Virus record (IMG/VR): IMGVR_UViG_3300005289_000052
Span: 179,670-243,669 of that record
DNA length: 64,000 bases
Strand: one strand, 5' to 3'
Part shown: in pieces, positions 2,317-54,207 of the stretch
Position numbering within the stretch: position 1 is the stretch's first letter
Layout: every line of letters starts with the position of its first letter
Program-made: the position numbers and the translations under genes
The notes under the pieces: generated by a model
The model's input: the letters and a program-made list of their open reading frames with translations, nothing else
Database searches by the model: none
Told to the model about the DNA's origin: nothing

Positions 2317-4353
2317 TTAACGGTTCCAGGTCCCGGTGAAGGGGGAACCGAACATGCGGGAACCTTGTTGCTGACCGCCACCGTAGTTGAAGAAGCCACC
2401 AACGTTGTTGGCAACCAGGTGGTTGAGGTCGTAGCCGCCGCGCTGGGTCAGGACGTTGTTGTCGTCCAGGCCTTTCGCAGGACGCACGTTCAGACCGCAA
2501 CGTACGATTGCTTCGGACAGCGCTTCCAGGAAGGAGTTGTCGAAGCTTACGCGACGAGCAAAGCCTTTGACGTGGATTTCCGATGCCAGGAGCTGACGCA
2601 GGATTTCTTTGCGCTGAGCCAGGCGGATTTCCAGAGGAACCTGGATGTTGCGGTGAGTTTCTTCCCACGCCTCGACCAGTTTCGGGTTGGTCTTGCCAGC
2701 CAGGTTGAGGATGGCCAGGTAGTCGATCTCACGCAGGTCACGACGATTGCCTTCGCGATCGTAGTAGAAGCCCAGGTGGATACGGTCCTGATCGTCGTAG
2801 CACACTGGCTTGGACGCATCGAACAACTGCTGGAAGTGACCCATGGTCAGGTTGTTGGCTGCTTGCAGGATGGTCAGACGTGCGTTCTCGTCGCCGTTGG
2901 CGGCCGCGATGTAGGTCTGGTGAATCCAGGACAGCTCGCCAACCTCGGCGATGTCGAGGGTGAAGATCAGCTTTTGACCGATCAGCATGTTGATGAGCTG
3001 GCGCATTTCGTTGTCACCGAAGTCGGCGGAACGAGTTGGCAGTGCATCAGGCTTGGCTTGCGGATCGCCGGTCAGGTTGACTTCGTAACCGGTAGCACCC
3101 AGGTCTTTCAGGTCCACGTCGGTAGCCTTGCCCTTGTTGGCGCGCCAGGTACCGGTGAACAGGCCGTTGCGGTTCAGGCCGAAAGCAGTGGACAGGGCCA
3201 GGAGTTGCAGCTCCATGTTCACGGCGTCGGTCAGGGTGTCGACCGAGGTCAGCACCATACGCGGCTGGTACATCTGGGTAGCCATCATTTGCTGCTGGTT
3301 GCCGAACATGCCGAAGGCTTGCTGCTGAGGCTGGAAGCCTGCTTGAGCCGGTTGGTACATCAGGTCGACGTAGCCAGCGACGCGAGTCAGTTGGCGGGTC
3401 TGTTGCAGGCTGAACTGCGAGTCGGCTTGGGACTGCGCGGACATGGTGACGATGATGTCTTCACGTACCGGCATGCCCACGATGTCTTCGCCGTGCTGAC
3501 GAGTGAACTCGACGCGCGCGCTCAGTTGGTCGCCGGAGCCGACTTCACCCAGGGTGAACGGTTCTTCGTTGCCGCCGAGCTGGTTGTCCATGATGGTGTA
3601 GCAGGCCTGGGTGCTGTTGTGCAGCAGGCGGTTGAAGCGGTTCTCGGTGCTGACTTCAGCTTCGGCTGGAATCACAACGCCACCGGCATCGTGGATCTGA
3701 GCGTTGAAGCCGTAGCTGTTGATGACGAACTGCTCCAGAACTTGCCAGTACGACTTGTTCAGGTAGATGTCGCCAGGCACGATGTCGACTTCGACGGTGG
3801 TGCCGCCCAGGTTCACGCTGCTTGGGTCCAGTGGAGCGCCGCTCGATTCGACCAGCAGGCTGTAGACAGCGATGTGCTTCTGGCCCTGGTATTCTTCGTA
3901 GTAGCAGACCAGGATGCTGGAGAAAGTCACCTTGGACTGGTTGTTGTCCAGTACCAGGATGTTGAACTCTTTCTTCTGCTGTTCGGTCAGCACTTTGCCA
4001 GCGCGTTCTTTCAGACCCAGTTGAATGGTCTGAACGTCTTCACCGGACATGTTCCGTGGAACAGGGCGGCGGTGGTTGGCGTTGATGTCCAGGACCGAAC
4101 GGCCACGGCTACCTACGCGGGAGTTGTTGTTGGATTGCTGGTTCATCTGAGCACCTGCGTTGAAAGGCTGTTGCGGTTGAGCATTGCCGCCAGTTGGCTG
4201 CTGTTGCTGCCCACCGGTTGGTTGTTGAGTTTGTTCTTGGGGCTGTTCAGCACCCGTTGGAGTCATACCCGCTTTCAGCATGGCATCTGCCATTGCGCTG
4301 TTCTGCGGCTGGTTCCCCTGGCTCTGGCCAGGTCCATTACGTTTGACGGACAT
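2317..4353 (-). CDS. chmA: Chimallin / phage nuclear shell protein (phiKZ gp54 type)
   Basis: 678 aa, strongly biased high-expression codons, lies between DNA polymerase block and nvRNAP beta' as in phiKZ; RIHLGFY...RDLREIDYL segment; low-complexity N-terminus and G/F-rich C-tail; early promoter upstream. Confidence 0.88.
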   Translation of the reverse strand: MSVKRNGPGQSQGNQPQNSAMADAMLKAGMTPTGAEQPQEQTQQPTGGQQQQPTGGNAQPQQPFNAGAQMNQQSNNNSRVGSRGRSVLDINANHRRPVPRNMSGEDVQTIQLGLKERAGKVLTEQQKKEFNILVLDNNQSKVTFSSILVCYYEEYQGQKHIAVYSLLVESSGAPLDPSSVNLGGTTVEVDIVPGDIYLNKSYWQVLEQFVINSYGFNAQIHDAGGVVIPAEAEVSTENRFNRLLHNSTQACYTIMDNQLGGNEEPFTLGEVGSGDQLSARVEFTRQHGEDIVGMPVREDIIVTMSAQSQADSQFSLQQTRQLTRVAGYVDLMYQPAQAGFQPQQQAFGMFGNQQQMMATQMYQPRMVLTSVDTLTDAVNMELQLLALSTAFGLNRNGLFTGTWRANKGKATDVDLKDLGATGYEVNLTGDPQAKPDALPTRSADFGDNEMRQLINMLIGQKLIFTLDIAEVGELSWIHQTYIAAANGDENARLTILQAANNLTMGHFQQLFDASKPVCYDDQDRIHLGFYYDREGNRRDLREIDYLAILNLAGKTNPKLVEAWEETHRNIQVPLEIRLAQRKEILRQLLASEIHVKGFARRVSFDNSFLEALSEAIVRCGLNVRPAKGLDDNNVLTQRGGYDLNHLVANNVGGFFNYGGGQQQGSRMFGSPFTGTWNR

Positions 4354-44633: not shown

Positions 44634-44987
44634 TCACATCGCGCAGACACACTCAGAAGGAGGTGGGTCACGCGGGATGATCTTCACGACTTGCTCGAGT
44701 TGCTTTTCCCAGACGACGTGTTCACGATAGCCATCAGACTTGACAGCCACGCATAGACCACAGTAGGGGAAGATGTAACCATGCCAGCCACCATTACGGG
44801 AATGGAACTTGAGACGTGGAATTTTCCTTACTTCCCCATCGAGGTTACCCAGGGCATCAGTAGAGACCTGAGTGTTAGGTTGATGGACAGCCTTCTCTTC
44901 GTAGATCTCCCAGAAGTCGCCATCAGCCGGAATCAGCACGTCACCTTTTTGCAGACGCACTGTTTCCATCATTACGGGTTCTTTCAT
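44634..44987 (-). CDS. Hypothetical protein, paralog 3 of triplet
   Basis: LQKGDVL...HQPN...DALGNLDG...YIFPYCG. Confidence 0.7.
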   Translation of the reverse strand: MKEPVMMETVRLQKGDVLIPADGDFWEIYEEKAVHQPNTQVSTDALGNLDGEVRKIPRLKFHSRNGGWHGYIFPYCGLCVAVKSDGYREHVVWEKQLEQVVKIIPRDPPPSECVCAM

Positions 44988-45286: not shown

Positions 45287-45634
45287 TTATTTCCCCTTGG
45301 ATCGAAGTAGTGGGGTCTCGATACGGGGATGGTGTACAACCTTGAATGTCTTCGGAAAGTTTTCTTCCTTAACTACCTTGCCTTCATTGTTCACGTACAA
45401 CAGCACACCGGAGTGTGGGAACAGGTAAGCTTGATAGCCGCGACCATCACGGAAATGATACTGCCAGACATTTTCAGGTGGTTTACCAACCCACTGACCC
45501 AACGAATTGGTCTTACCCTCATAGTTAGGTTCAGGTACGTAATTTCTTCCCACGAAGGTCAAGTCATACGCCGGTAGATAATCGCCAGCAAAGATCTGGT
45601 CAACGCTAGCAGTCGAAGGCTTTACTCCGGTCAT
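45287..45634 (-). CDS. Hypothetical protein, paralog 1 of triplet
   Basis: IFAGDYL...PEPN...NSLGQWVG...YHFRDGR...YLFPHSG. Confidence 0.7.
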   Translation of the reverse strand: MTGVKPSTASVDQIFAGDYLPAYDLTFVGRNYVPEPNYEGKTNSLGQWVGKPPENVWQYHFRDGRGYQAYLFPHSGVLLYVNNEGKVVKEENFPKTFKVVHHPRIETPLLRSKGK

Positions 45635-45637
45635 CCT

Positions 45638-45865
45638 TTACATCCTTTTCTTAAATGTGTACACGATTACCAGCCCAACCGACAACACCACAACGTAAGC
45701 GATCTGTGCGATCTCGATACCATCACGGTGTCCTACCACACACTTCAAATAGATGGCCAACGCCACGTAAAGGATTGACGTTATGATCAAGAACCAAGCG
45801 GTCTTGCTCCAACCCTTAATGAAAGCCCAGAACTCTTTAAGAGCTTCCAAATTCTCTTTCCACAT
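45638..45865 (-). CDS. Small membrane protein (2 TM)
   Basis: GGAGGAG RBS; two hydrophobic stretches; basic C-terminus. Confidence 0.7.
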   Translation of the reverse strand: MWKENLEALKEFWAFIKGWSKTAWFLIITSILYVALAIYLKCVVGHRDGIEIAQIAYVVVLSVGLVIVYTFKKRM

Positions 45866-45936: not shown

Positions 45937-46011
45937 AGATTTAGATAGAATGCGATTTAAGCGGCATAAAAGCCCTAGGGGTATAACCCCTAGGGTCTTA
46001 TGACGATCGTA

Positions 46012-46725
46012 TCACCACCGGGCGCTGGGCGGCTCCTGATGGGACAGCAACTCGGCTGTAGCACCCTTGACTTTCTTCCACTCGGTAGAATCAAGTTTTC
46101 GGAGATTAGTTACCTCTCCTTTATCCCAACCCTTAACCCAACGAGAGAACTCAAAGGTCCAATACCCCTCGGTCAAGATCACGTCATGACTGAAACGTAC
46201 GGTAGCCCCTTTAGCAACCTCAAAGAACACCTCGATGGTTTTCTCACCCCGAGCATTACGCTGATACTCACGCACCGAGCGATAGAAGTACTTACCAATG
46301 ATCTCAGCACTGTACTGCCACTTCTCAGGTGTATAAGGAACCAGCCAACGTTCGTCAGTGAAGTCAGCATCGTAGAGCACTTTGACGTTAGGCTTGACAG
46401 AGACCTCGTTACGGAAACCGTAAACGTACCATCCGTCCCGCCATTTCTTTTCAGCACGACCCCACTCCCAATCAGCACGATCCTGTTGATAACCCAGGAT
46501 GCAACCAAAGATCGTAGGTGCAACACTTACCCGAGGAACCGAACGATCTTCCTTAGGTGCAGAACGTTGCGTCAAAGCCGGGACAAACTTCTTGATGCCA
46601 GGGTTAGTGGAGATGTGGTACAACCACTCCTGACCCAAGTCATCAGGGGACACTACTTCACAGTTCTTACCGACACCGTTACGGAAGGACCCAATGTACG
46701 CTTCACAGGCTTCAATGTCATTCAT
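46012..46725 (-). CDS. Conserved protein (phiKZ gp174-like by synteny), probable head protein
   Basis: LYHIS...F.P......ED.SVPRVSVAPTI.GC; follows protease; ends PPSARW. Confidence 0.7.
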   Translation of the reverse strand: MNDIEACEAYIGSFRNGVGKNCEVVSPDDLGQEWLYHISTNPGIKKFVPALTQRSAPKEDRSVPRVSVAPTIFGCILGYQQDRADWEWGRAEKKWRDGWYVYGFRNEVSVKPNVKVLYDADFTDERWLVPYTPEKWQYSAEIIGKYFYRSVREYQRNARGEKTIEVFFEVAKGATVRFSHDVILTEGYWTFEFSRWVKGWDKGEVTNLRKLDSTEWKKVKGATAELLSHQEPPSARW

Positions 46726-46734
46726 GTCGCCCCC

Positions 46735-47499
46735 TTACCAGCGAGCGGACGGTGGCAGGACCAGACCAGCCTTACCGTGTTTCTTCCAGCCGAAGTCGAC
46801 GAAGATAGTGGAGCCAGAAACGCCACCAGACGATTCCATGGAAACGCCAGCACCAACGCCAGTATCCAAGGATTCGATGTGATCTCGGGTGAACTCCATT
46901 TCCTGGAAGGATTCCAGAGACGGAGCATTCCACTTACGAGCATAGTCAATGCCAGGCTCGTTCACGTAGTCCCAGGTCACGATGGTGCGGATGTGCTTGA
47001 CCAGACGACCACCTTCGATCTTGTCATCGGTCAGAGAACGTACCGAGAAGCAAACGCTCTCGTTTGGGTTCTCCAGCGATTCACCCAACGCTTGACCTTT
47101 CGGACCGCTAGGCTTCACACGACCAATTACGGCAACCACACGTTGACCAGACTTATCCTTGACGGCGTTCTGTTCAATGCGTACGTCAGCGAAGTGACAG
47201 CAGACGTTGTCTTCGTAGATGGTGGAGACACGGCGCAGGAAGCTACGCATGTCCTGGTTGGGGAGTTGTTTCGGGTGACCGTATTCACCACGGCAAGCAC
47301 CGGTTTCAATCCGACGCATCAGGCTGGACGATTGCTCGAACAGCGACTTGGCCGATGCCAGTGGATAGAATGCACCACCACTGTTGTAACAATCCAGACC
47401 ACCCAGCACCAGCTCGTAATAGCCTTCGCTGTCGGGTCGGACCTTTCCTACTTTGTTTGTGCCGAGCAACGCGACACAACCATAACTGACACGTTCCAT
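46735..47499 (-). CDS. Prohead maturation protease (phiKZ gp175-like)
   Basis: GEYGHP (His), FSVRS (Ser), TWDYVNEPG; C-terminal SLE/SME autocleavage sites. Confidence 0.9.
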   Translation of the reverse strand: MERVSYGCVALLGTNKVGKVRPDSEGYYELVLGGLDCYNSGGAFYPLASAKSLFEQSSSLMRRIETGACRGEYGHPKQLPNQDMRSFLRRVSTIYEDNVCCHFADVRIEQNAVKDKSGQRVVAVIGRVKPSGPKGQALGESLENPNESVCFSVRSLTDDKIEGGRLVKHIRTIVTWDYVNEPGIDYARKWNAPSLESFQEMEFTRDHIESLDTGVGAGVSMESSGGVSGSTIFVDFGWKKHGKAGLVLPPSARW

Positions 47500-47505
47500 A
47501 GCACG

Positions 47506-48228
47506 TTACCTTCTCAAGAGTCCTTCGATAGGCTCCACTGTGTCGGAAGGGTTCACCAATGCGGAGGTTAAGCCTTCTTCCCAATAGGCACCTACCAGTT
47601 TAGCGGTGGTGTTACTTGCCCCGTACGTAACGCTTCGCAGCGGAATGAATGTCGGGTCGATAGCCAAGTCCTTTTCGGTCTTGACTGACTGGCGGTAGTA
47701 TTGCGTCCGGTCATTGGCCAAACGACTGATGGCGGCTACAATCATTTCCACGATGGCGTGGTTAGCCCCCACCGAGACTCCCGCATGGTGGCGAGCGCTC
47801 TCGAAGATACGTCCCAGTTCTTGGTAACCCATGAACCAAGGTACGTGCCCTTTACCTAACAGCTCCGAATAAATTCGGTAGATGAAGATGTCGCTCTTGA
47901 GGAGGTTGATGTTGGCAATCACCACAGAACCAGGAGTGAACACGAACTCGATGTAGTCTTCGTCTTCAATCTTGATATAGTTGGTGATCGTGGGCTCGAT
48001 GCGCATCATGGCGTTGGCTAACGATACACCCATGTAGGTGTCGTCAACCGTGATTGCAAAGATACCAGAGATCGAAGTCTCAGTACCTAGGAACGCCATC
48101 TGTTGTTCAGCAAAACGGGCAGGGATGTAGATCTTACACCCCTTCGTTGTTACCAACGTCCCGTCTTCCATTTCCTTCAGATACGCATGAACCTTGGAAG
48201 CATCCCGCTTAAGCTTCTTCGGGTCCAT
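47506..48228 (-). CDS. Conserved protein (phiKZ gp176-like)
   Basis: Synteny; GHVPWFMGY motif. Confidence 0.72.
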   Translation of the reverse strand: MDPKKLKRDASKVHAYLKEMEDGTLVTTKGCKIYIPARFAEQQMAFLGTETSISGIFAITVDDTYMGVSLANAMMRIEPTITNYIKIEDEDYIEFVFTPGSVVIANINLLKSDIFIYRIYSELLGKGHVPWFMGYQELGRIFESARHHAGVSVGANHAIVEMIVAAISRLANDRTQYYRQSVKTEKDLAIDPTFIPLRSVTYGASNTTAKLVGAYWEEGLTSALVNPSDTVEPIEGLLRR

Positions 48229-48238
48229 ACTCTACCCC

Positions 48239-49684
48239 TTACTGGCCAGGTGCGTCTTTGGTGATCAGAGTCGCAACCCAAGTAGGGACGAACTCCATCA
48301 GAGCCAGCAAGCCGACTTCACGCATTTCCAGTTCTGGGTGCTCTTTGGCAACGCTGTCCATGGTGGACAGGATGTCGTAGGCGTTGGTGTGCGGGAAGAT
48401 CACCGAGCAGATGACTTTACGCAGAGTGATGAACAGGTCATCCTCGTACCAGTTGTTCGGCATCTGGCGGATGTAGTTGTGCAGAGCAACAACGTACACC
48501 TTACGCTCGGTCACCAGCAGGTCTTCCGGCAGGTTCTCGATCTCTTTCTCGACCGCACGAACCAGACCAGTTTGGTAGTGGTTGGCTTTCTGCAAACGCA
48601 GGTTGGTAGCCATCACACGTTCCTGGGATTCCCAGACCTTGATGTAACGGTCCTTGCGCTCCAGCAGGATGTCGTAGTTCGAGTTGCGATCCGAAACGAA
48701 TGCACCGAACAGAACTTCTGGAGTACCACCGGCTTCGAGCCACTTGTCGTAGACGTCGGCGTTCACACGGATTTCGACAGGGTTAATACCGATGTCGTCT
48801 TCACGGAAACGCGACCAGTCAGCAACCAGGACTTTACGCTTGGAGTTGGACTCACGACGCTCCAGGGTACGGCAAACAGCACGAGCAGCTTGGCTCATGA
48901 TGTCGATGACGTACTCTTTGTACTCGTTCAGACCAGCCTGTACACCTTCCGGGGTCACTTCGCACAGACGCGAGGCAATCAAGAAGATCACGAGGATCTG
49001 AGTCGGTTCAACGTACAGGTGGTTCAGGTGCGACAACAGCGAAGAGTTGTAAGACTCGTCACGGTTAACGAAGATCTTGTTGTAGATCTCCTGAACGTAA
49101 CCTTGCGGCAGCGTGTCGATGAACGATTGCAGCTCGGTATTGAAACGGGCAACGCCGGTCTCAACCAGAGCCAGTGGGGAAGCTAGGCCGTCAGCCATCG
49201 GTACGGTGATGCTCAGACGAACATCCTTTACAGGAGTTTCGTTGTAGCGGTCAACCAGACCGGTCAGGTAGTGGCTGTCCCAGATGTCAGCAAACTTGTC
49301 AGCACGTACCGAGATGGCAGTGTTCTTCAAAGTCAGTGCATCGTCGACGTATTGCGACACGTAGTCACAAGCAGCCTTTACCGAAGGGTTGACTTGGTTA
49401 CGGGCAACGTCGAGGTTCCAGGCGATGGTCTTCTTCAAGACCTCGATGACCTCATCCATTACCATGTCGTGTTCAACCACGCCAGCGGCGTTCTTGGATT
49501 GAGCGCCGAACATGATGCGTTCTTCGATCGACATCTCGAGAGTGCCGACGTCAGGGTTTGGCAGGTAGCCTGCACGGACCAGACTGGCCAGAGGAGTACC
49601 GTCGATTGCACGAATCGCCAGACCCTTGTTATCCAGTACCTGAGCCAGGCTCACCGCTGCTGTCAAGGAGTTATAGTTCAGCAT
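48239..49684 (-). CDS. Conserved protein (phiKZ gp177-like)
   Basis: Synteny; 481 aa. Confidence 0.72.
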   Translation of the reverse strand: MLNYNSLTAAVSLAQVLDNKGLAIRAIDGTPLASLVRAGYLPNPDVGTLEMSIEERIMFGAQSKNAAGVVEHDMVMDEVIEVLKKTIAWNLDVARNQVNPSVKAACDYVSQYVDDALTLKNTAISVRADKFADIWDSHYLTGLVDRYNETPVKDVRLSITVPMADGLASPLALVETGVARFNTELQSFIDTLPQGYVQEIYNKIFVNRDESYNSSLLSHLNHLYVEPTQILVIFLIASRLCEVTPEGVQAGLNEYKEYVIDIMSQAARAVCRTLERRESNSKRKVLVADWSRFREDDIGINPVEIRVNADVYDKWLEAGGTPEVLFGAFVSDRNSNYDILLERKDRYIKVWESQERVMATNLRLQKANHYQTGLVRAVEKEIENLPEDLLVTERKVYVVALHNYIRQMPNNWYEDDLFITLRKVICSVIFPHTNAYDILSTMDSVAKEHPELEMREVGLLALMEFVPTWVATLITKDAPGQ

Positions 49685-49932: not shown

Positions 49933-52900
49933 TCAACCTTTTCTGTACGCCTCAACCACCTTCTTGCTGAGGACCTTGAGAAGCGTGGTAGTGGTACCAA
50001 TCAACTCAGGCGACAGCACGATACGGTTCGAGAAGGAAGTGTACGAGAAGATGGCACCCAGTGGCAGACCAGACAGCGTCGTGTTGACACCGGACATCAC
50101 CCGACCAAAGATGGTCTTCATCTGGTTAGCGAACACACCTTTGTCACCCACGCCTGCCCCGACCTCAGTCGTTACATAGATGCGGATCAACATCGAGTCC
50201 ATGTTCAGAGGGTTACCCGCTACACGCAGGGCACCGTCTACGCTACCAGTCAGAACCTTACGACCCAAAGCCCTTTGGAGCTTAGCCCGTTCTTTGTCCC
50301 CGTGATCAGCAATGGCGCGAAGACTTTCAGACATGTCTTCTTTATCGCCGTTGTAGTACACCTCGATGGATTCTACCACCCCGTTGTACTTCGCTTTCGG
50401 AGTTGGACTCCCCAGCAAACGGAGTGTATCGATCGAGTCTTCGTCGAACAAATCGGTGTTAGCCGTTACGGCGTCTTCGATTGTACATAAAATATCCTCA
50501 CTATCGACCTTTTGCCCCTTGGTTACCAGACCGTGAATCTTCTGGTCAAACGTTACCACGAGGTCACGAGGTTTAGTGATCTGAGTCCGAAGCAATTTTG
50601 CAATGTCTTCAGAGATCACCGAGGAGTCTTCTAAGGTATCGGCACACTCCAGAATAGCTGTCCGTACAGTGATACCAGTCTTCAAAGAAACTTGAGACGG
50701 GTTCAACGCACTAGGCTTGAAGTAGTGAGAGTTGTAGGCAACCACATCACCAGCTTTGATCTTCTGCCCCACCTTGAGTTCTGAAACTACCTCATGTGGG
50801 AAGATCTTACCGGCTACCGTACCGAAGCGACGACCCAGCTCTACCGAACGCTGAGTACCGTCTTTGTATTCAACCGTAATAGCTTTGTCGCTGACAGCAA
50901 CCACAACACCATCACCCTTCGCCGTGTAGGCAAAGAGGTCGTTCACACGGTGAGGCAATACGTCGCCATAACCAGTCTGAACTGGCTGGACATCGTAACC
51001 CACGGCAAACATGGTGGAGTGATACTGGATACCAATGAAGTTCACACGCTTCGGGTCGTCCCGGTCTGCACAAGGCGAAACCAGAGCAGCAGTCGAGATC
51101 AACTTGGTCGCACCATCTTGACCAGGTTCGTAACGACGGCTCAAACCACGCAAGGAAGTGAAGTTCGGGTCCGCAGTGGTAAACGTCGAAATAGCTACGT
51201 CACCAGAGTCCACGGTCGACTCGGAGATCACACCCATGTCGTTAGGGTGGAATACACGGCTACGCTTAACCATCGAACGACGGCTACGTCCACCAGTACC
51301 ACCAAACGTCACAGACTCTTGGGTACGCAAGCACTCAATCGGGTTCGACTCTTCCACCTGACCTTTTGACGGGTCGTCCTGAATAGCCTGCCAGATAGCG
51401 TGAGGCGCCATCTCCATCTTGTTCCCCGCCGCACCACGACGAGCGTTGTGTACACGAGCGGAGCGAACCATCTCTGCGTAGACCGCACCAGAGATCCTTT
51501 CATACCCCTTGATCCGCATGTACTCCATATCCGTTTCGGCAGGAGCCCAGTCAGTGGTCAACAACTCCACTGCACGAACCAACAGACCTTCCCACTCAGT
51601 GGGTTCCTTCATCTCTGTCAGGAGGTCGAAGGTGATAGGGTCAATGAACAGATCACGCAACAGGTCGAGTTCACGCAGATAACGCACACCGATCTTGTTG
51701 GTCTCCAACACGTTCAGGTAAACGTCTTTGCGGTTGAAGTCGTACACACTGTGCGAACGGATAGCTTTCCAATACGACAGGAAGCCAGCCATCAACAGAG
51801 AGACTACTTTATCGTCACGATGGAAGATCAAGTTCTCATCGGCAAAGCGAACAGCGTATTCGCCTTCACCCAACTTGAGTCGCTCACCCACCTGCTGACG
51901 ACGGAACACGGTTGGCCTGAGGGCCTTGATCACACGTTCCAGACCGAAGTAGTAGCCGAGGATAATGCCCATCGGGATGGACTTGTTGAACACACCCATC
52001 TCTGCCATTTCAAGCGGAGCCTTAGAGGTGTCCAACTGCAACAGCTCTTCCAGTTTACCCAATGGTTCAGGACCACGGGCTTTCTGGACGTACAGGGTAT
52101 CGTACTGATCGACCAAGACCAGTTCAGCACCCTTCTTACCGATGACCACCATGCCCTTGGATTCAGCAGCACGAACTTTAGCCTCACCGAACTCCTTCTC
52201 ACGATTAGTAAACTCGAAGAAGAAGTCAATCCCTACCGCAGTGAAGCGCCGGAAACTCTGAGACAGCAAGCTGTAGAGTCGTGGGGTTTTGTTCAGGTGA
52301 TCAAACACGTTTGACGGGCGCAACTCAGACACACGGTTGTCTTTCGGGTCCAGTCCGATTGCTCGGATGGTATCACTCAGCCATTTTGGATAGTTGTTGA
52401 CAGATCGTGGTGACCGATCAACGAAGACTTTACCATAATAGCTAGTGAGAGCAACACTGGTCGAATCAACCTTCCGAATAGGGACATCGCCACGCTGCTT
52501 CCGTAAGCTGTAGCGTACCCCGTTTGCCAAATAAGAACCATCTGGTGATACCTTGGGAACTTTAAAACGAATGGTGGAGGCAGGGCCGGTAGCCGGTGCC
52601 AGTTTAATGGTGTGGATTTCGTAGTGGTTGAGAACATCCTCTACTTCTTCCACTTGGTAATCGACAATCGCGATACCAGCGTTCTGCAACGACATCACCG
52701 AGTTGACGATGTCTTTGTTCAGGATCTCCGTGACGTACCGGCTATCGAACTCCAGCAGAGACGATTGCAGCATGGTCTTGTCGAAGACCAGTGGGTTGTC
52801 AGGGATCTTGGTGGACGACGTGATCTTTAGGGACTCAGGCTTGATCACAATGTGGTCAGCCAACATACCTGGACCGTACGGGTTCTTGATCTCTTTGTAG

Positions 52901-54207
52901 CTGTTAGCCAGCTTCATGAGACGACGATACTCACCGCCAGTCATCATCCCCGAGTCAGCCATTTCGTTGGCCTTATCGACGATCCCTTGGTCCAGTGGCT
53001 TACGCTCACCGCCGATCTTCACGAGTGCCGGAACTGTAGTCTCCAGCTCAGCCTCGTTCTTCTCAGCAGCTTCGTTCATCTGGTCCAGACCCTCAAGATC
53101 TTTATCGATCTCAGCATCCATCGCAGCAATAGCAGCCAACTCGTCCAAGTCTTCTTTGAGGTGTCGTGCTTGTTCCTCTTTGAAGTCGACGTCGGAGATG
53201 AAGTCCTCATCCTGCGTAGTGACAACAGGGCCAGACTCTTCCAACTGCTTCGCAACAGTGGACGTGCCTTTCTTGTTCTCAATCGCATCAGGGTGAAGGT
53301 TGTCCTCGTCCTCTACCTGCTCTTCCTCCTCCTGCACCTCTACGATGGTGTGGGATTCTTGCAGGGTCATCAAAGACTTGAGGAAACGCTTCTGGAGTAC
53401 GAGAGAGTCGACACCTGGTGTCTTCTTACCCTCAGCATCCACCCCTGACTTCCACGAGTTCAGCAACCCAAGGTTCACACAGAACCAACGATCCTTCGAT
53501 TGGAAGATCACGTTGACCTTAGCGTAGTTCTCGGGTTTGATGTGACCCATCGGGGACTCAGCCCGGTTATCACCCAACCACTGGAACATGTCCATGATGT
53601 TGAATGATTCGTTGCCTTGGATCTTCGTCAGGCTGGTACGGTCAATACGGCGATCAGCCATACGCAGCGCAGTAAAGGATGGCAACATGTCTGGGAGTTG
53701 GACACGGACGAACTGGTGACGGTCAGGCCACTCAGTTGCAATCTCATCCACCTTCTTCCACATGGTCACCCGAACGTTTACCCAGCGGTAGTAAGCCGCA
53801 AAGAAACTGGTTGGGTAACGCTTGAGGAATTGAAGCGGTGCAAAGTTCTCAACCACCCAAATCCGTGGGTTACCAAACACCGAGGCCGGGGACATCAACG
53901 GACGGATCTTAGATCGCGTACGACGTTGGTATTCCCGGATTGGCTTCTGGACAATGAACGGAGTGGGCTTAGGATTACCGATATCGGAACGCAACTCGAT
54001 GTTGTGCTCGATGTAGACCATCTTCTCAGAGTTCTTGATCAGAGGGTCGTCCAGGCCGATGCCGAACGTTGCAGAGTCTTCAGGAAAGTAGTTGATCACC
54101 GCCCCTTGTGGGAGCGACAACTTAGCGATCCCGAATGAAACAGGCATCGTGAAATTCGGTAGACGACGCACACCGAATGCACGATACCACATGGGGTAAA
54201 GAAGCAT
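49933..54207 (-). CDS. Virion RNA polymerase beta-like subunit (phiKZ gp178-like)
   Basis: GGTGGRS, SESTVDSGDV, DDPKR, EDSSVIS, GDKGVFANQMKT motifs; 1424 aa. Confidence 0.92.
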   Translation of the reverse strand: MLLYPMWYRAFGVRRLPNFTMPVSFGIAKLSLPQGAVINYFPEDSATFGIGLDDPLIKNSEKMVYIEHNIELRSDIGNPKPTPFIVQKPIREYQRRTRSKIRPLMSPASVFGNPRIWVVENFAPLQFLKRYPTSFFAAYYRWVNVRVTMWKKVDEIATEWPDRHQFVRVQLPDMLPSFTALRMADRRIDRTSLTKIQGNESFNIMDMFQWLGDNRAESPMGHIKPENYAKVNVIFQSKDRWFCVNLGLLNSWKSGVDAEGKKTPGVDSLVLQKRFLKSLMTLQESHTIVEVQEEEEQVEDEDNLHPDAIENKKGTSTVAKQLEESGPVVTTQDEDFISDVDFKEEQARHLKEDLDELAAIAAMDAEIDKDLEGLDQMNEAAEKNEAELETTVPALVKIGGERKPLDQGIVDKANEMADSGMMTGGEYRRLMKLANSYKEIKNPYGPGMLADHIVIKPESLKITSSTKIPDNPLVFDKTMLQSSLLEFDSRYVTEILNKDIVNSVMSLQNAGIAIVDYQVEEVEDVLNHYEIHTIKLAPATGPASTIRFKVPKVSPDGSYLANGVRYSLRKQRGDVPIRKVDSTSVALTSYYGKVFVDRSPRSVNNYPKWLSDTIRAIGLDPKDNRVSELRPSNVFDHLNKTPRLYSLLSQSFRRFTAVGIDFFFEFTNREKEFGEAKVRAAESKGMVVIGKKGAELVLVDQYDTLYVQKARGPEPLGKLEELLQLDTSKAPLEMAEMGVFNKSIPMGIILGYYFGLERVIKALRPTVFRRQQVGERLKLGEGEYAVRFADENLIFHRDDKVVSLLMAGFLSYWKAIRSHSVYDFNRKDVYLNVLETNKIGVRYLRELDLLRDLFIDPITFDLLTEMKEPTEWEGLLVRAVELLTTDWAPAETDMEYMRIKGYERISGAVYAEMVRSARVHNARRGAAGNKMEMAPHAIWQAIQDDPSKGQVEESNPIECLRTQESVTFGGTGGRSRRSMVKRSRVFHPNDMGVISESTVDSGDVAISTFTTADPNFTSLRGLSRRYEPGQDGATKLISTAALVSPCADRDDPKRVNFIGIQYHSTMFAVGYDVQPVQTGYGDVLPHRVNDLFAYTAKGDGVVVAVSDKAITVEYKDGTQRSVELGRRFGTVAGKIFPHEVVSELKVGQKIKAGDVVAYNSHYFKPSALNPSQVSLKTGITVRTAILECADTLEDSSVISEDIAKLLRTQITKPRDLVVTFDQKIHGLVTKGQKVDSEDILCTIEDAVTANTDLFDEDSIDTLRLLGSPTPKAKYNGVVESIEVYYNGDKEDMSESLRAIADHGDKERAKLQRALGRKVLTGSVDGALRVAGNPLNMDSMLIRIYVTTEVGAGVGDKGVFANQMKTIFGRVMSGVNTTLSGLPLGAIFSYTSFSNRIVLSPELIGTTTTLLKVLSKKVVEAYRKG

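Follow-up and report, generated by a model that had tools for sequence, protein, structure and literature searches.

Short terminal peptides that dock proteins in capsids have been described in several systems, and they provide the comparison for a peptide found here in a nucleus-forming jumbo phage, IMG/VR virus record IMGVR_UViG_3300005289_000052, of which a stretch of 64,000 nucleotides (positions 179,670 to 243,669; hereafter the window) was analysed. Two adjacent genes in the window, coding for an S80 family prohead protease and for a protein of the family phrog_5043 (hereafter the neighbour), terminate in the same hexapeptide, PPSARW. In HK97, Duda, Oh and Hendrix reportedly found in 2013 that a C-terminal capsid-targeting tail docks the protease inside the shell and is also able to bring in foreign cargo, and we know of no natural second HK97 protein with the same tail. 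Here too a prohead protease ends in a short segment of this kind, but the HK97 protease belongs to a family unrelated in sequence and its motif is a different one. In the lambda C/Nu3 and herpesvirus UL26/UL26.5 pairs, a protease and a scaffold share a common C-terminus derived from nested in-frame genes, and two proteins thereby reach one capsid-protein site via an identical end peptide. Those pairs are encoded in overlapping frames and have a scaffold as partner, whereas in the window the genes are separate and unrelated, the partner is enzyme-like and the 6-8 terminal residues are common by selection. Encapsulin cargo-loading peptides are also short and C-terminal and dock cargo enzymes on the inside of a shell with the HK97 fold, but they differ in motif and system, and in the present case the capsid protein is one candidate receptor among others. 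The T4 capsid targeting sequence, said to have been described by Mullaney and Black in 1996, is a short peptide that loads proteins, including non-structural enzymes for host delivery, into the prohead; it is N-terminal and common to several cargoes, whereas the tail described here is C-terminal, at the free end, and borne by two proteins per genome. T4 packages the ADP-ribosyltransferase (ART) Alt (PMC13282480). The Alt paralogs ModA and ModB stay out of the head, and homologs of the neighbour that lack the tail would parallel ModA and ModB.

The closest described relatives of the window protease are gp245 of SPN3US and gp175 of phiKZ, which belong to the same family and comprise a catalytic domain, an S/A/G-x-E autocleavage site and a C-terminal propeptide. 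The gp245 protein autocleaves at E203, removing a 64-residue C-terminal propeptide (PMC5694885, PMC10052503). The protease of the SPN3US am66 mutant, from which the last 26 residues are missing, autocleaves and cuts substrate in vitro but is missing from the mutant proheads, and its authors concluded that a packaging signal lies in the C-terminal region (PMC7411985). The last 26 residues, which include the tail, are thus needed for prohead incorporation in SPN3US, which is indirect evidence for a requirement of the tail itself. In the passages searched of these publications the segment is presented as a C-terminal 'domain' or 'propeptide', with no defined terminal motif. Within the literature searched, including passages of the SPN3US and phiKZ protease papers, no description was found of the terminal motif, its family-wide conservation or a second carrier family.

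The protease gene of the window (46735..47499, minus strand; 254 amino acids) ends in LVLPPSARW, with PPSARW forming residues 249-254 (46738..46755, minus strand) before a TAA stop codon (46735..46737). The neighbour gene (46012..46725, minus strand; 237 amino acids), which begins nine bases past the protease stop, ends in HQEPPSARW, with PPSARW forming residues 232-237 (46015..46032, minus strand) before a TGA stop codon (46012..46014). The coding sequences of the two tails differ at 6/18 bases, with the serine encoded by TCC in the protease and by AGC in the neighbour, and the two protein families, S80 and phrog_5043, are unrelated. A first-pass annotation had noted that the two products share this ending with different codons and had read it as conservation at the protein level in otherwise dissimilar proteins; both the codons and this reading are confirmed here. 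Exactly two copies of PPSARW occur in the six-frame translation of the complete 243,669-bp genome, both at these C-termini. Among the 253 genes selected in this genome with a codon-usage model, the protease and its neighbour form the sole pair with a common C-terminal 5-mer or 6-mer, compared with an expectation from composition of 0.0014 pairs with a common C-terminal 6-mer genome-wide and 1.1e-5 for adjacent genes. No further carriers of the tail were found in this genome, where three other W-ending genes do not match the motif; the terminal W of a 316-amino acid protein is unconserved in five homologs, while a W-ending protein of 351 amino acids has no homologs in the five phages searched. 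Only two carriers per genome were likewise observed in Eowyn, FLC9 and IMG/VR genome G001 when searched with genome-specific tail patterns, suggesting that the tail is a private address rather than a general cargo tag.

The protease belongs to the Peptidase_S80 family (Pfam PF20034, residues 6-223; 256 bits against a cut-off of 23.4; e-value: 2.7e-76) and matches phrog_3014 (e-value: 7.6e-79). It is a homolog of phiKZ gp175 and SPN3US gp245, sharing 34% amino acid identity with the latter. The catalytic triad H75, S152 and D177 is invariant in 120/120 homologs and aligns with H77, S153 and D178 of gp245 (gp245 residues from PMC5694885). Two candidate autocleavage sites of the [SAG]-x-E type, SLE196 (46912..46920, minus strand) and SME222 (46834..46842, minus strand), lie upstream of the tail, while the gp245 cleavage residue E203 aligns to E202 of the window protease. 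A predicted C-terminal propeptide, residues 197-254 (46738..46911, minus strand), extends downstream of the candidate sites. An [SAG]-x-E site is located past residue 150 in all 121 protease homologs, mostly 20-35 residues before the end, and the window protease therefore probably autocleaves at such a site near its C-terminus. The statement in the first-pass annotation that proteases of this type remove their own C-terminal peptide agrees with these predicted sites and with the published autocleavage in SPN3US (PMC5694885). A G-W element (D-F-G-W or D-L-G-W) is also observed at protease residues ~235-240 (~46780..46797), 15-20 residues from the end, in 83/121 homologs as well as in the phiKZ and PhiPA3 proteases, both of which lack a terminal W; it may form part of the same docking segment. 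Furthermore, a second S80-like copy, short (~150-180 amino acids) and divergent, is encoded elsewhere in IMG/VR genomes G002 and G001 (L038 and L039; 313-315 kb). One of these copies contains in-frame stops, and both recall gp117, a truncated protease relative in SPN3US (PMC5694885).

The first-pass annotation had named absence of the motif from orthologs among the observations that would refute its reading, but orthologs of both genes carry it over a wide divergence. PPSARW is the local form of a general motif, P-[PA]-[S/aromatic]-x-[KR]-W-COOH. Among protease homologs sharing 46-91% amino acid identity with the window protease, 115/120 end in W, with these 115 showing P at position -5 (91%), [PA], S at -3 (76%), A (57%) and K/R at -1 (61%) ahead of the W. 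The SPN3US gp245 protein is also W-ending. All 22 close homologs of the neighbour end in E-P-[PA]-S-[AK]-x-W, and in the 141-sequence neighbour alignment (A3) W237 is conserved at 94% and P232 at 79%. The neighbour family comprises 557 representative clusters in a profile search (e-value <= 1e-3); of the representatives inspected (50% level), 117/148 end in W and 133/148 have a W within the last four residues. Members with additional domains behind the neighbour domain, among them P0280 (NUDIX), P0171 (864 amino acids), P0218, P0237 and P0181, likewise have the motif as their last residues, so it must occupy a free C-terminus. In a tree constructed without the last 12 residues, 11 tail-less members require 11 separate changes, so the tail is ancestral in the sampled neighbour family and has been lost sporadically, while some of the losses may be gene-call artefacts. 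Around one tenth of the family, including SPN3US gp246, lacks the tail, and the core function of the neighbour is as such independent of it. Conversely, a profile search (e-value <= 0.01) found no neighbour-family gene in PhiPA3, RTH11, Xoo-sp14, RP12 and Phabio, and the proteases of RTH11, Xoo-sp14 and RP12 nevertheless retain the W tail. In the phiKZ record (~257.1 kb), a short 159-amino acid open frame (L050:1498-1977, plus strand) is related to the N-terminal portion of the neighbour family (profile e-value: 2.6e-7); a long distance separates it from the protease gene, and it lacks a W tail.

The tails of the two proteins covary within genomes. Protease and neighbour tail pairs from 15 lineages were scored over the seven residues preceding the W, and the mean score was 13.9 within genomes but 8.7 between different genomes (n = 15; permutation p = 1e-5; the genomes being related and partly retaining shared ancestry). 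The signal persists on a conservative set of 11 pairs, from which the clade with the consensus motif and one member of every close pair were removed (p = 9e-4). The protease and neighbour tails end, respectively, in GSQLW and GSELW in Eowyn, PGWARW and PGFFKW in IMG/VR genome G004, AGSFNHW and AGSYEW in Goslar, and PAFLEW and PPHLQW in FLC9, in which the two genes are 78 kb apart, while in two IMG/VR genomes R/A-P-G-S is found in both tails. This strong variation among phages of related hosts, together with the covariation within each phage, points to a fast-evolving, phage-encoded partner. In the 11 genomes of the window clade the coding sequences of the two tails differ at 4-7/18 bases, mostly synonymously and including TCN versus AGC serine codons, indicating purifying selection on the peptide rather than recent copying or gene conversion.

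We suggest that the common ending is, on balance probably, a docking peptide which both proteins share for a single site in the prohead and which the neighbour, as a cargo enzyme, has borrowed. The motif would form the end of the autocleaved C-terminal propeptide of the S80 proteases in nucleus-forming jumbo phages (Chimalliviridae), where it would anchor the protease zymogen inside the assembling prohead, either to the core or scaffold or to the major capsid protein, at its inner face or its propeptide. Once the prohead is assembled, the catalytic domain would be released by autocleavage at an S/A/G-x-E site. The neighbour, with the same free C-terminal tail, would compete for, or share, the docking site of the protease, and a few copies may be loaded as low-copy cargo into the virion and the next host, by analogy with T4 Alt; alternatively, it may act as a competitor. 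We infer a common receptor for the two tails, packaging of the neighbour and its enzymatic activity. The W-tailed proteases of the neighbour-less RTH11, Xoo-sp14 and RP12 indicate that this receptor is a third component and not the neighbour, which was rejected as the general receptor of the protease tail on the same grounds. The C-terminal prohead-targeting signal proposed in the first-pass annotation is partly supported by the SPN3US protease lacking its last 26 residues, which is active but unincorporated (PMC7411985), while the two carriers per genome are at odds with a general cargo tag.

Several observations weigh against the shared docking peptide. The proteases of phiKZ, PhiPA3 and Phabio end in a related basic P-x-aromatic-[ML]-R without the terminal W, which is therefore not universal; the label 'phiKZ-type' in the first-pass annotation accordingly holds for the protease family and not for the exact motif, given the W-less ends in phiKZ and PhiPA3. 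The tail pairs of PCH45 and PhiEaH1 show little same-genome likeness, the genomes in the permutation test are not fully independent of one another, and occasional exchange between the two tails could produce covariation. The SPN3US mass-spectrometry papers searched for gp246, the tail-less homolog of the neighbour in that phage, do not name it in their main text. A complex prediction that paired protease residues 213-254 with the major capsid protein (L041:6011-8188:-) returned a score of 0.00, in itself a neutral result.

Alternatively, the tail of the neighbour may serve as a decoy or regulator, competing to set the amount or timing of protease loading, with the neighbour then degraded or excluded. 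Such a role would draw on the same facts as a common receptor and fits the tight linkage and likely co-transcription of the two genes, nine bases apart and served by one terminator, as well as the annotation of the neighbour as a structural protein in none of the records examined. However, the neighbour is modelled with confidence as two folded domains and has invariant polar residues of the kind usual in enzymes, its core function needs no tail given the existence of tail-less members, and many phages with tailed proteases have no neighbour; we regard a decoy as unlikely, though the foremost of the alternatives. Ranked after it, and likewise unlikely, is a tail directed not at the capsid but at a factor of the host or another one of the phage, as a signal for, say, membrane association at the site of prohead assembly or stability control by a tail-specific protease or chaperone. 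In its favour, carboxylate-reading domains typically recognise motifs that require a free C-terminus and end in an aromatic residue. A conserved host factor is, however, difficult to reconcile with tails that vary strongly among phages of related hosts and covary within a phage, and the am66 phenotype consists specifically of the loss of incorporation with activity kept (PMC7411985).

A direct partnership, in which the body of the neighbour works as a chaperone or adaptor that receives the protease tail and also its own, the latter in cis or head-to-tail, would account for the adjacency and covariation of the two genes, and the tail of the neighbour is modelled with fair confidence (predicted local distance difference test, pLDDT, ~80). 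This arrangement appears quite improbable in view of RTH11, Xoo-sp14 and RP12, whose W-tailed proteases have no neighbour-family gene to bind to at the profile threshold applied above, of the 78 kb between the genes in FLC9, and of gp246 going unmentioned among the SPN3US prohead proteins in the main text. Chance identity, or a functionless recent local duplication or gene conversion, is the least credible account, to which we assign next to no weight. Gene adjacency would favour local copying, but chance is countered by an expectation of the order of 1e-5 for adjacent genes, and copying by the 4-7/18 base differences in every clade genome with the peptide kept; furthermore, both families retain the motif across hundreds of divergent homologs. 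Chance, gene conversion and recent duplication were therefore ruled out on the codon differences, the chance expectation and the homolog conservation. Beyond the shared docking peptide itself, a broader proposition holds that the tail is a portable chimallivirus tag of 6-8 residues at a free C-terminus, which originated as a protease anchor, co-evolves with its prohead receptor, was adopted by a hitherto unrecognised ART-like enzyme family for packaging and for delivery into the host along with the DNA, and is sufficient for loading foreign proteins into jumbo-phage heads. This is possible, but in its entirety we consider it doubtful.

The AlphaFold2 model of the neighbour based on the 141-sequence alignment reached a pLDDT of 92 and a predicted template modelling score (pTM) of 0.88, whereas the single-sequence fold had a pLDDT of 33. 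An N-terminal domain (~residues 20-145; 46291..46668, minus strand) has an ART-like fold according to low-score structural matches, while a C-terminal beta-rich domain (~residues 146-224; 46054..46290, minus strand) gave scattered low-Z rows and no informative structural match. In VIA-align, ~20 of the top 40 rows are ART-fold chains, but at Z 4-5.5, below the Z 7-8 often reached by unmatched models. These weak matches include Scabin (5.5), pierisin (5.0), Tpt1 (4.9), pertussis S1 (4.7), Arr (4.3) and diphtheria toxin (4.1), with an Rhs ART toxin, RES and ParT among the further ART-fold chains. A language-model feature search similarly returned Arr (0.92) and, with Arr excluded, a viral DarT/PARP cluster (0.90) and Tox-ART-HYD1 (0.85). 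A candidate triad is formed by H37 (46615..46617; 99% conserved; strand 34-39), Y102 (46420..46422; 81% conserved; strand 99-105) and E125 (46351..46353; 100% conserved; before strand 126-128), all encoded on the minus strand. Their order on the strands is that expected of the H-Y-E clade, although the equivalence is only a candidate one. The neighbour has no Pfam family, and a Pfam search with all 141 family members (e-value <= 1) gave no family of the ART clan. No match was obtained by Foldseek against the PDB with the neighbour model or by a sequence profile search of the PDB, and structure searches of BFVD and the ESM-Atlas returned uncharacterised phage proteins only. In view of this missing sequence-profile link the neighbour is termed ART-like rather than filed as a member of the superfamily; the leads, weak but convergent, point to an H-Y-E ADP-ribosyltransferase-like enzyme.

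Right before the tail of the neighbour the sequence departs from the [SAG]-x-E pattern, as the conserved Q/E-E preceding P-P has an aromatic residue or His, and not S/A/G, at the third position before the cleavage point (P3). A candidate STE215 site is found 22 residues before the end, with S/A/G at P3 in only about half of the close homologs. The neighbour domain can furthermore be observed in fusion with HNH, GNAT, Pol-beta-type nucleotidyltransferase or NUDIX domains (P0144, P0168, P0176 and P0280) and as tandem duplicates of ~470-495 amino acids (P0207, P0216, P0273 and P0276), some of which may be merged gene calls.

The virus record has a G+C content of 52%. It encodes the nuclear shell protein chimallin (2317..4353, minus strand, corresponding to L042:87-2123; phrog_4795; e-value: 3e-116), a phiKZ-type major head protein (phrog_3231) and the virion RNA polymerase beta subunit (49933..54207, minus strand; 1,424 amino acids; phrog_3148; e-value: 0), on the basis of which it was identified as a nucleus-forming jumbo phage. 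The polymerase gene heads a conserved module in which it is followed, all on the minus strand, by a 64-amino acid open reading frame (ORF), a gene for a 481-amino acid protein (48239..49684), a gene for a 240-amino acid protein (47506..48228; phrog_2926; e-value: 1.9e-82) upstream of the protease, and the protease itself. The 240-amino acid protein, which does not carry the motif, is a homolog of SPN3US gp244 (31% amino acid identity; e-value: 9e-35) and phiKZ gp176, and gp244 acts as the C-terminal subunit of the virion RNA polymerase beta' (PMC5694885). The transcription unit closes with the protease gene and then the neighbour gene, and a terminator-like hairpin (45973..45995, minus strand; 10-bp stem with seven G-C pairs, and a T run) is located 17 bases past the stop codon of the neighbour. 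The order of polymerase beta, small ORF, ~480-amino acid protein, gp244-like gene and protease is the same in SPN3US, RTH11, Xoo-sp14, RP12, FLC9 and Goslar. The neighbour, by contrast, is mobile around the protease: it is found downstream of it in the window genome, SPN3US and L064, with the gp176-like gene on one side and the protease on the other in the enterobacterial phages Goslar, Eowyn, PCH45, PhiEaH1, Moabite, Proteus phage 10 and Centimanus, and at a distance in FLC9.

An open frame of 523 amino acids (46000..47571, plus strand) runs antisense over the protease and neighbour genes and represents an artefact of the 52% G+C genome. Past the terminator, a 75-amino acid hydrophobic ORF (45638..45865) precedes a pair of small paralogous proteins (29% amino acid identity; e-value: 2e-8) of 115 (45287..45634, minus strand) and 117 amino acids (44634..44987, minus strand), with a 100-amino acid ORF between them. 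A family was found for none of these four proteins.

The basis on which the ~50 head proteins of nucleus-forming jumbo phages are selected is largely unexplained. Where earlier work on the protease held that the C-terminal propeptide probably targets it, the present analysis narrows this to a defined terminal motif that is old and family-wide, with the neighbour as a natural second carrier that can serve for internal control. From the covariation within genomes, a tail moved from one phage into another would be expected to work only together with its receptor, which offers a genetic route to the receptor. Were the peptide sufficient, it would be a minimal tag by which proteins could be loaded into the capsids of jumbo phages. 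The neighbour family, with its 557 clusters and no annotation, furthermore gains a first functional lead, as a possible enzyme that uses nicotinamide adenine dinucleotide (NAD+).

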